From the sequence record LC727699.1: 64,000 nucleotides of DNA; one strand, written 5' to 3'. Below are positions 12,583-20,721 of the stretch, one piece after another. A program made the translations under genes and the position numbers. Within the stretch, counting starts at the first letter, position 1. Each line of letters starts with the position of its first letter. The notes beneath the pieces are model-generated. The model had not been told where the DNA came from, searched no databases, and saw nothing but the letters and a program-made list of their open reading frames with translations.

Positions 12583-12889
12583 AATTAATATCCATCCATC
12601 TCTCAGGAATGGATATTGTCAAATTGCCTGCTTGATCTCGAAAGAGTCAAGTAAATCCTCTCTAATTGCTGGGACATCTCAATGAGACAATCAGCAGCGA
12701 AGCTTTCCAGAAATGGATTGAACGTTCAACGACTATCCGGTTACGCGGAGTACACTCAAGCGAGTGGAAATGGGAGGGACCTGACCACCTAGGGTGAAGG
12801 TTAAGATATAGTCTGGTCTGCATGGTGACATGCAGCTGCCTGCAATACGAGAGGCGGGGTAAGCGTAGCGAACTTACCTGAACATAACG
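12583..12889 (+). mobile_element. Group I self-splicing intron, subclass IA2, 307 nt, no homing endonuclease ORF
   Basis: P AATTGCTGGGA 12664, Q AATCAGCAGC 12689, R GTTCAACGACTA 12724, S AAGATATAGTCT 12803; P7 GACTA/TAGTC; P3 CCTCTC/GGGAGG; P7.1 and P7.2 stems; exon ends in U, intron ends in G; splicing restores in-frame FHGG|KGVICKV. Confidence 0.93.
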
Positions 12890-18612: not shown

Positions 18613-18660
18613 CATAAACCCCTCTCCATGTGGAGAGGGGCCTGTCTTTATTTTTTTTTT
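18613..18660. terminator. Bidirectional hairpin CCCCTCTCC-ATGT-GGAGAGGGG with T tract
   Basis: Between convergent genes; CATAA upstream, long T run downstream. Confidence 0.7.
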
Positions 18661-19156
18661 ATTTAGTTAACGGCTTGTTTAATTCATTTAACTGGTTATT
18701 GTTATTAACAGCTTCATTATGGGTAATATTTCTACATAATTCAATTATGTATTCTACCTCAGAATAAGCTAATTCAAAGAATTCAGTTAATGACATATTA
18801 GATAAGCTACCTACTTTATACTTGAAGAAATCTCTAGTCAGTCTCCTTCTCAACCCACCTTCGATAAAGTCCTCTTTAGGATTTACCTTATTTAACCACA
18901 TGGGTCCGTTTTCTGGTGAACCGATATCGTAATCAAGTAGATATGCTTCTCTTGTTAAACGTGCTGCTGTAGACGGTCTTACTGCCCCTACTGTCGATAA
19001 TAGTCTATCTAAGTGTGTATCATCTTCAGTTAACTTATCATAACCAAAGTTTGGATGTAGGATGTGACCACTATCTTCCTTGAAAGTGGCCTCAAGACGA
19101 CTATATCTCAGATCATTAACTACACCATCCGGTTTGACTTCGAGGCCGCCAAAGTA
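18659..19156 (-). CDS. gp76-position frame: 165 sense codons open, first ATG only at 18901; probable -1 frameshift extension of the upstream gene
   Basis: Frame read manually from the T7 run: YFGGLEVKPDGVVNDLRYSRLEAT...GSPENGPMWLNKVNPKEDFIEGGLRRRL...PLTK*; no ATG/GTG/TTG in the first 85 codons. Confidence 0.65.
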   Translation of the reverse strand, partial: YFGGLEVKPDGVVNDLRYSRLEATFKEDSGHILHPNFGYDKLTEDDTHLDRLLSTVGAVRPSTAARLTREAYLLDYDIGSPENGPMWLNKVNPKEDFIEGGLRRRLTRDFFKYKVGSLSNMSLTEFFELAYSEVEYIIELCRNITHNEAVNNNNQLNELNKPLTK

Positions 19157-20721
19157 AAAAAAGTTGACAGCATGTCAATAGGGATTAAGTGTGGGAAACG
19201 TTCTTTAAATTTAGTAGCAGCAGGTGACTCACATACTGGACAATTCCAACTTGTAATTGCAATCATTCCAATTAGTTGTGAATCAATGAAGTTACTCACC
19301 GCATTAATAAAGCGGTCATTATATTCCGGTGTGGATAGAATATTAGTTAAGAACTTTTCAATAGTTTCACGATTAGTGGTTGCAGTACGAATATTGTCTT
19401 CAGAACTTTCACCATCGTCATCTTCACGTACTTTAATTTCTTTAACAAAATGTGAGAACTGACGGGCAATAGAGATCTTTTGTAAACGTGCAATATACTG
19501 AGAACGTTGCGGACCATCGACTGGTTCATTAAAACTACCTTGAGTCATATCGATAATTGAGTTAATCCAACTATCACCAGACTCTCGGCGATCAGCAATT
19601 GTACACATCTCAAGAACAACACCAACGTCACCAAACATTTCAGTTACTTGAGTTTCAATACGGAATCCTTCTTTATAAGTCTTAAGATCAGATTCAGTAC
19701 ATGCATTAAACTTACGTGCAATATATTTCTTTTGTTCTTCTGAGAATGCCAGTAGATCATATTGAACAAGCGTTGACATATTAAGTTTCGCTGTTTCAAT
19801 ATGGTTACATGTATTGGCATCTGCAATGCATGGATAACTATAATTAAATCCATCTGGATACATAGTCGCCGCTAGTGCGTGATGCAAGAACGGCTCATCA
19901 GCTACTGAGATAACATGCTCTAGATCAGTTGGGGTGTTGAACTTATAGTTGGATTGAATAACACATGCAAGTGCTAAACTACTAACCATGTTAAGTAACA
20001 CAGCTGCCATGTTTGAGAACAGCATACCTTTTGATTCAGCGCCTAGCCGGATCTTTAATTGTGCTAGACGTGCTTGTAGGGCAGCTACTTCAGTACCAGT
20101 AGGTGCACGTAGTTTTACCCAAATACCTGAATGAGGTAGGAAAGTATCATATGGCGTACCGATGTTAGCTTTACGTGTTAGGAAAACTAGAGTTTCATCA
20201 TCGGTCATTTTACGACCATTGGTATTAAATACAGGTCGGCCAGGTCGAATGATCTTTTCACCATAAGGAATTTCACTAGACCATTCAGAACCTTCTCGGG
20301 CAGTTGCACCGATTGGTGCATCTTCAACAATAGAGTGAGCTAAGCCTTCCAGAATAGCAGCTGTCCACTTTACACCGTCACTAGTGTCATCTACTTTATT
20401 ATCAGCAAATGCTTTAAATAGTTCTTTATTGTGATCCAGGAAATTATAAACAGTCTGGGGATTCTCACGTAGTAAAGTAAGAATGCTAGCACTATCTTTA
20501 ATAGCCGGTTCAGAAGCATCCCGGATATTTCCAGTTTTAGCATTACGTGGAATACGTAGTTTAATTTCTTTTTGATCAGGAACGAAAGGTGGAGTTTCCA
20601 CCTCGTCATTATTTTCAATACTAGAGTCAGGATCGTGTTGCGCATTGATCTCATCAATTTGATCTAGTAAATTCTCTTCTGGAGTATCATCGTACTCATT
20701 ATCGAAGTCAGCAGTAGCCAT
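19120..20721 (-). CDS. Putative tail/baseplate assembly chaperone (gp77 position, T4 gp26-like)
   Basis: 533-aa ORF; Cys motifs YPCIADANTCNH and WNCPVCESP; family call is inference. Confidence 0.55.
   Translation of the reverse strand: MATADFDNEYDDTPEENLLDQIDEINAQHDPDSSIENNDEVETPPFVPDQKEIKLRIPRNAKTGNIRDASEPAIKDSASILTLLRENPQTVYNFLDHNKELFKAFADNKVDDTSDGVKWTAAILEGLAHSIVEDAPIGATAREGSEWSSEIPYGEKIIRPGRPVFNTNGRKMTDDETLVFLTRKANIGTPYDTFLPHSGIWVKLRAPTGTEVAALQARLAQLKIRLGAESKGMLFSNMAAVLLNMVSSLALACVIQSNYKFNTPTDLEHVISVADEPFLHHALAATMYPDGFNYSYPCIADANTCNHIETAKLNMSTLVQYDLLAFSEEQKKYIARKFNACTESDLKTYKEGFRIETQVTEMFGDVGVVLEMCTIADRRESGDSWINSIIDMTQGSFNEPVDGPQRSQYIARLQKISIARQFSHFVKEIKVREDDDGESSEDNIRTATTNRETIEKFLTNILSTPEYNDRFINAVSNFIDSQLIGMIAITSWNCPVCESPAATKFKERFPHLIPIDMLSTFFTLAASKSNRMV

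Follow-up and report, generated by a model that had tools for sequence, protein, structure and literature searches.

Organisation of the gp77 locus

The DNA analysed here (the window) comprises 64,000 nucleotides (nt) of sequence record LC727699.1, from a phiKZ-type phage. The element under study is a run of seven T residues near the 3' end of its homologue of phiKZ gene 77, at which a −1 frameshift is proposed to join two overlapping open reading frames (ORFs). This region matches Pseudomonas phage sp. LC at 100% identity, and phiKZ and 45 other phiKZ-like genomes at 99% identity. Three minus-strand genes are found here, which in phiKZ numbering correspond to PHIKZ078 (164 amino acids, aa), PHIKZ077 (533 aa) and PHIKZ076.4 (80 aa). 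The frame-0 ORF of 533 codons plus TAG stop (19120..20721, minus strand) was assigned as the phiKZ gp77 homologue by ORF calling, translation and its match to PHIKZ077, to which the protein is orthologous at 99–100% identity.

The T-run is located at 19156..19162 (minus strand) and was identified from the sequence and from its relatives. It is read as ACT TTT TTT ACT in frame 0, so that T TTT TTT would constitute a −1 slippery heptamer with Phe codons in the P and A sites; after 11 further sense codons, the TAG stop is reached. The −1 frame is open from the codon after an upstream TGA through a TAA stop (18659..19174, minus strand), as judged by translation, homology and codon composition. The TGA lies six codons upstream of the entry point, and 165 codons remain open after the site, to position 18659. 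These 165 codons (19156 down to 18662, minus strand) form the proposed C-terminal extension of a trans-frame product. The first ATG, GTG or TTG of the −1 frame is codon 86, with none in the preceding 85 codons, and represents the start of the annotated PHIKZ076.4 (18659..18901, minus strand; 80 aa, counted from the first ATG); gene callers report no other part of the −1 ORF. An earlier note on this DNA, made from the sequence alone, had proposed a programmed −1 site at this position; its coordinates, the heptamer, the 11 codons to the stop, the TGA six codons upstream, the 165 open codons and the 85 codons without a start were all correct. Open −1 stretches inside gp77-type genes average 10.6 codons, and the 165-codon stretch is therefore beyond what chance would produce.

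Conservation of the two-frame arrangement

The comparison was based on 71 IMG/VR loci found with a gp77 profile, 9 usable phage loci from GenBank and 6 very distant phages; a tenth GenBank locus, from phage Churi, was excluded owing to its opposite orientation. The gp77 genes were clustered into 42 lineages at ≤70% protein identity. The site was located in 77 loci, 75 of which contain a −1 ORF of at least 140 codons that begins at the T-run, near the end of the gp77 homologue. Across these 75 loci, the T-run sits at the same two codons, usually encoding Phe-Phe. One of the other two loci is cut by a contig end, and in the second, from Pseudomonas phage RVTF4 (L010), the downstream ORF is interrupted once. 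An additional locus missed by the scan (L062) shows the same layout. The six distant phages (SPN3US, phiEaH2, PCH45, LAh10, Halocynthia phage JM-2012 and Bacillus phage AgentSmith) match as well, each with a T-run of 6–8 residues and a −1 ORF of 153–191 codons. The earlier note had named conservation of the T-run across Chimalliviridae as a check on its proposal, and a run of 5–8 T was present at this position in every relative examined, that is, in 42/42 lineages and in the six distant phages, where a −1 ORF of 150–190 codons comes after it. The family covers Gram-negative hosts and, with one phage, Bacillus.

The geometry of the overlap is equally constant. The downstream ORF lies in the −1 frame in every lineage, never in frame 0 or +1, and the +1 frame usually runs into a stop within 1–20 codons. 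The frame-0 stop is found 8–18 codons past the site in the 42 lineages, roughly 14–20 codons past it in five of the distant phages and 44 codons past it in PCH45 (counted from protein tails). Judged by these sequence comparisons, the two-frame arrangement is ancestral to the nucleus-forming jumbo phages and retained in all of them.

Homopolymer runs are notorious for sequencing errors and indels, and the split could in principle reflect such an error or a recent frameshift mutation, with a decaying downstream piece. The distribution across genomes already refutes this explanation. Both pieces are present at 99–100% identity and in the same two frames in 47 independently sequenced phiKZ-like genomes, which excludes a sequencing error; the same layout recurs in the 42 deeply diverged lineages and the six distant phages, and the downstream ORF is still conserved as protein. 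We thus assign the artefact a negligible probability.

Two side observations concern individual loci. RVTF4 is the only complete locus with an interrupted −1 ORF; the remainder of this ORF lies in a different frame, under a short gene annotated separately, and the interruption may be either a sequencing error or a genuine change. The frame-0 tails after the T-run in PCH45 (44 codons) and in SPN3US and phiEaH2 (20 codons each) produce long overlaps of the two frames.

A conserved −1 reading frame that mostly lacks an early start

The start-less stretch of the window has a coding-like composition, with G+C contents at the three codon positions (GC1/2/3) of 0.56/0.44/0.25, as compared to a GC3 of 0.26 in the gene body. 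The protein family phrog_12109 spans residues 26–163 of the 165-residue −1 piece, and tblastn matches to this piece in phiPA3, PA1C, Psa21, Phabio and Noxifer begin at residue 1, i.e. at the site itself; in these phages, the matched region lies under two annotated genes. An alignment of 36 diverse −1 pieces showed residues F37, G38, Y72 and P85 to be invariant or near-invariant, all of them upstream of the ATG of phiKZ. The −1 peptide is homologous in all relatives, with conservation setting in close to the site.

The downstream ORF could instead be a separate gene, translated by reinitiation, from a non-canonical start or from its first ATG, GTG or TTG, with the T-run kept merely for its Phe-Phe dipeptide. 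In 201phi2-1, a TTG does overlap the upstream stop. Against this explanation, no ATG, GTG or TTG is present in the −1 frame from its opening to the invariant F-G motif in 25/41 lineages, and a start with even a 4-nt Shine-Dalgarno match was found in only 3 lineages. First start codons in the −1 ORF are scattered from codon 8 to codon 136, for which reason the database proteins representing the downstream ORF range from 74 to 182 aa; the claim that annotations split the locus and truncate its downstream part was thus borne out. A separate gene would also not be expected to lie always in the −1 frame and never in frame 0 or +1.

A version in which the two pieces are fused in frame was not found among 20 word-indexed homologues. 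A gp77 profile search of 1.84 billion representatives yielded 1684 clusters at E≤1e-3, and among the best 150 of the 1684 cluster representatives, no protein extended more than 26 residues past the profile end. Two relatives of 686–687 aa (phiEaH2 and ctLnO19) were considered as fusions and rejected, as their extra length is N-terminal and both keep the T-run and a separate −1 ORF.

Selection on the nucleotides at the T-run

In the P site, 40/42 lineages use TTT and the other two GTT; the last two bases of this codon are TT in all 42, and its synonymous third base thus shows zero entropy. In the A site, 32/42 lineages have TTT and 10/42 TTC, giving the slippery pattern N TTT TTY in 40 lineages and GTT TTT in 2. 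Elsewhere in the same genes, only 266 of 759 Phe codons (35%) are TTT, so that conservation of the motif (TTT in 40/42 at the site) exceeds the requirement of the protein. Three genes contain no TTT at all among 15–24 other Phe codons, yet the site reads TTT TTT or TTT TTC in each of them. The synonymous base preceding the six-base core is T in 31/42 lineages, and the base following the core is A in 37/42.

The frame-0 protein is itself conserved around the site, as FF-T-L plus a basic residue six codons later, which is what would be expected if the downstream ORF were an independent gene and the run were needed only as Phe-Phe. This need leaves unexplained, however, why TTT is used rather than TTC in genes that otherwise avoid TTT, and why the preceding synonymous base is T. 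In view of this and of the missing starts, we consider two independently translated genes to be very unlikely.

The length of the run varies more than its codon phase: 7–8 T are present in 26/42 lineages and 5–6 T in 16/42 (e.g. GAG TTT TTC, ACC GTT TTT). The strictly kept feature is the codon-phased ..TT TTY and not the run length. This distinction bears on the alternative raised by the earlier note, namely that slippage of the phage RNA polymerase along the T-run adds an extra U to some mRNAs, from which the same long product would be made. Chimalliviridae transcribe their middle and late genes with their own unusual polymerase, and a run of 7–8 T, as in the 26 lineages above, could support such stuttering; in addition, E. 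coli genes avoid U7 runs whatever the frame, an avoidance that has partly been ascribed to transcriptional slippage (PMC4066793). With just 5–6 T, as in the remaining 16 lineages, several of which have no more than five, polymerase slippage is unlikely, and a TTC in the A site shortens the run yet preserves tRNA re-pairing. Transcriptional slippage is therefore possible at runs of 7–8 T, and unlikely as the general explanation.

Expression and transposon data

In the expression and ESSENTIALITY data available for phiKZ, the transposon tables list 0 counts for both PHIKZ077 and PHIKZ076.4 in one set and 18 and 2 counts, respectively, in the other, and thousands of counts for PHIKZ076.2 and 076.3 (PMC12676376 supplement), with the meaning of the table columns as interpreted by us. 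By these tables, the gp77 gene is apparently essential. In RNA-seq data, the transcripts of PHIKZ077 and PHIKZ076.4 fall together on knock-down of PHIKZ054, 055 or 069, unlike that of the convergent early gene 076.3, which responds differently (PMC12571901 supplement); middle or late expression therefore fits the two pieces. Antisense oligomers against PHIKZ077 are flagged 'tox' in the source table, and no inference was drawn from them.

Programmed −1 ribosomal frameshifting as the favoured reading

The locus is best explained by a programmed −1 ribosomal frameshift that yields proteins of 533 aa and ~687 aa (probability about 0.75). According to this model, most ribosomes on the gp77 mRNA would stop at the TAG and release the 533-aa protein, while a fraction would slip back by one base, with two tRNA-Phe re-pairing on UUU UUU within U UUU UUU, and then read the −1 frame for 165 codons. 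The resulting product of ~687 aa would consist of the first 522 residues of gp77, a Gly/Pro-rich linker and a conserved, mostly helical domain, whose last 80 residues correspond to the annotated PHIKZ076.4. We infer that the slippage is ribosomal from the marks of a selected recoding site, namely conservation at synonymous positions and a start-less homologous −1 peptide. These marks support the site proposed in the earlier note, and two products, as it had suggested, would result. An arrangement so old and so universally kept implies a need for both isoforms, probably at a fixed ratio.

The heptamer of the window, T TTT TTT, is in the correct phase for −1 slippage. Motifs of its class, H_HH.U_UU.Y, show some of the highest −1 efficiencies in E. 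coli; among tetramers, U_UU.C and U_UU.U come second only to A_AA.G, and U_UU.U_UU.C is employed by insertion sequence (IS) elements (Sharma et al., PMC4066793).

Several points weigh against this reading. The joint probability of the observed codons, calculated from each gene's own codon usage, is ~1e-23 and speaks for selection on the site, but it is a naive value that treats related lineages as more independent than they are; this caveat is countered by the fact that synonymous sites are saturated at between-lineage distances. In 11/42 lineages, a base other than T precedes the six-base core, and perfect re-pairing is then limited to the A-site tetramer. A conserved downstream hairpin or pseudoknot was not found: the folds of the 70 nt downstream had a mean z of −0.55 across the lineages, with 7/42 below −2, and in the window a long-range stem starting 7 nt past the heptamer reached only z=−0.9. 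Similarly, no conserved purine-rich, Shine-Dalgarno-like upstream element was detected in the 42-lineage alignment, and Rfam gave no match at the slippery site. Since no stimulator was detected, the efficiency of slippage may be low or may rely on an undetected element. The literature searched contained no proteomic or ribosome-profiling report of the long form, and no mention of PHIKZ077, PHIKZ076.4 or a Chimalliviridae frameshift; the proteins called 'gp77' in papers on Goslar, PCH45 and phiPA3 are different proteins and were set aside. Finally, RNA over PHIKZ076.4 is ~6-fold more abundant than that over PHIKZ077 at 15 min (7995 vs 1288 reads per kilobase per million mapped reads; PMC12571901 supplement). 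An internal transcript may thus exist, as an independent downstream gene would have it. The excess suggests an extra 3' RNA species, arising from an internal promoter or as a stable, terminator-protected fragment, and leaves room for an additional 80-aa product from the ATG alongside the long form.

Comparison with known frameshift systems

The gp77 locus resembles the lambda G/GT system in several ways: slippage by −1 towards the 3' end of a morphogenesis-type phage gene would yield two proteins, one short and one extended at its C-terminus; a slippery site is present; and the overlapping −1 ORF lacks a proper start and is commonly mis-annotated. In lambda G/GT and its counterparts in other tailed phages, as here, it is the arrangement that is conserved and not the sequence. 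The two systems differ in position and size. gp77 is encoded among the genes for a non-virion RNA polymerase (nvRNAP), a helicase, a head protein and the virion RNA polymerase (vRNAP), not between tail tube and tape measure genes, and its products of 533/687 aa are much larger than those of G/GT, which have very roughly 140 and 280 aa. Moreover, neither piece matched any of the tail-chaperone families in Pfam, PHROGs and NCBIfam, and the sole fold match named 'tail assembly chaperone' had E=2.8. The link to lambda G/GT is therefore an analogy of mechanism only. The assignment to the G/GT-like tail-assembly chaperones made in the earlier note holds for the mechanism and fails, on position, size and homology, for family membership.

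Similarities were also noted with the bacterial X_XX.Z_ZZ.N signals of IS3/IS1 transposase orfA-orfB fusions and dnaX, which share the H_HH.U_UU.Y heptamer and the production of a fusion from overlapping ORFs. These systems differ from gp77, where neither a conserved downstream structure nor an upstream Shine-Dalgarno-like stimulator was detected.

Identity and possible function of gp77

phiKZ gp077 is listed as the Chimalliviridae core gene cg18, 'hypothetical protein', and in the core-table rows around this entry, cg17 (gp075) is directly followed by cg18 (gp077), with no own entry for the −1 ORF at that place (supplement of 10.1101/2023.02.24.529968). The conservation of this ORF is nevertheless as broad as that of cg18.

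An AlphaFold2 (AF2) model of gp77 was obtained with a predicted local distance difference test score (pLDDT) of 78 and a predicted template modelling score (pTM) of 0.81. The site is contained in its last helix (residues 517–532); together with the conserved frame-0 residues, this indicates that the short form possesses a functional C-terminus of its own. The model of the −1 piece was poor (pLDDT 62) and helical, and matched only its own family. No family was found for either piece in Pfam or NCBIfam, and only families of 'unknown function' in PHROGs. A sequence search of solved structures with three profiles returned nothing meaningful, and Foldseek searches with the gp77 model gave no match in the PDB (best E=2.3). 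Against predicted viral structures, the gp77 model matched its own family and, more weakly, T4-like proteins of 246–284 aa (E 1.6e-4 to 3.3e-3, probability 1.0, template modelling score 0.51–0.57 on the target) that carry the names 'baseplate hub assembly protein, T4-like', 'baseplate hub subunit' and 'hub assembly chaperone'.

Some further features agree with a resemblance to T4 gp26/gp51. By eye, T4 gp26 and the gp77 family share the order of a Cys pair, CPxC and FFxL near the C-terminus, and two annotators independently gave hub-assembly names to gp77 homologues. In the phiKZ and 201phi2-1 records, the gp77 homologue carries no virion marking, whereas its neighbours carry structural or mass-spectrometry notes. 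On the other hand, gp77 is about twice the size of T4 gp26/gp51; the FF of T4 gene 26 is not encoded by a T-run, and the second product of this gene, 26', arises from an internal start (as annotated). The Pfam family PF12322 (T4_baseplate) hit only 1/39 members of the gp77 family, at E=0.072 and thus below the cut-off, whereas T4 gp26 and gp51, used as controls, scored 8.8e-64 and 3.9e-52. An hhalign comparison of the gp77 and T4 family alignments gave a probability of 0.5%, which is not significant, in a weak test in which the T4 alignment held only 4 sequences; against T4 gp26 alone, the gp77 family reached 35% over 18 columns, also not significant.

Based on the model comparisons, our low-confidence guess is that gp77 may help to assemble the tail baseplate hub as a non-virion factor, and the T4 gp26/gp51 likeness should be taken as a lead rather than a result. 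The morphogenetic-chaperone role suggested in the earlier note may hold in this form; profile comparison does not confirm it. A wider proposal is offered tentatively: every nucleus-forming jumbo phage would need an obligatory, ratio-setting −1 ribosomal frameshift in cg18, which appends a start-less domain of ~160 residues that would count as an unrecognised core gene, and the two isoforms would jointly act as a baseplate-hub assembly factor, making the system a jumbo-myovirus counterpart of the G/GT logic that arose independently in an unrelated protein and operates with no classical RNA stimulator.

T4 gp26 and gp51 are paralogues that both belong to PF12322, and gp26 ends with CPxC followed by FFxLL (L088, 10405-11429, genes 26 and 25). 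T4 gene 25 starts on the last base of the gene 26 stop codon and thus lies in the −1 frame; an ATG of its own is present, but a T-run is not. A correspondence of the −1 piece to T4 gp25, suggested by this gene order, was rejected on the grounds of its helical prediction and the lack of Pfam support. In Churi, a 47-aa ORF adjoining the locus (gp258; L001, 6065-6208) is annotated 'baseplate hub protein'; this label looks mis-assigned and may belong to the gp77 homologue.

Implications

If the frameshift takes place as proposed, it would be a family-wide recoding event in the much-studied Chimalliviridae, situated in a core and apparently essential gene, and the core gene set would gain a conserved domain. 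Hundreds of genomes would need re-annotation, since their downstream ORFs are either missed or begun at arbitrary starts, with called lengths of 74–182 aa. A recoding site kept from Pseudomonas to Bacillus hosts with no evident RNA stimulator would also inform on the slipperiness of U UUU UUY in vivo. Should the T4 gp26/gp51 likeness hold, the gp77 isoforms would point to the tail-hub assembly pathway of nucleus-forming jumbo phages.

Neighbouring genes and features

On one side, the PHIKZ078-077-076.4 genes border on the helicase gene gp75 and small early ORFs; on the other side lie the genes for the head protein gp79 and the vRNAP protein gp80. The nvRNAP subunit gene gp74 is also located nearby, and the neighbourhood is the same in phiKZ, 201phi2-1, phiPA3 and others. 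Terminator scoring revealed a G+C-rich hairpin between the convergent genes PHIKZ076.4 and PHIKZ076.3 (18619..18640, no strand assigned), which is terminator-like on both strands and likely marks the 3' end of the gp78–gp77–076.4 transcript. Further away, a group I catalytic intron was detected at 12607-12835 on the plus strand (Rfam RF00028, 84 bits, E 6e-20), ~3 kb upstream of the helicase gene and on the same strand as the latter; by its position, it should lie among the nvRNAP subunit genes.

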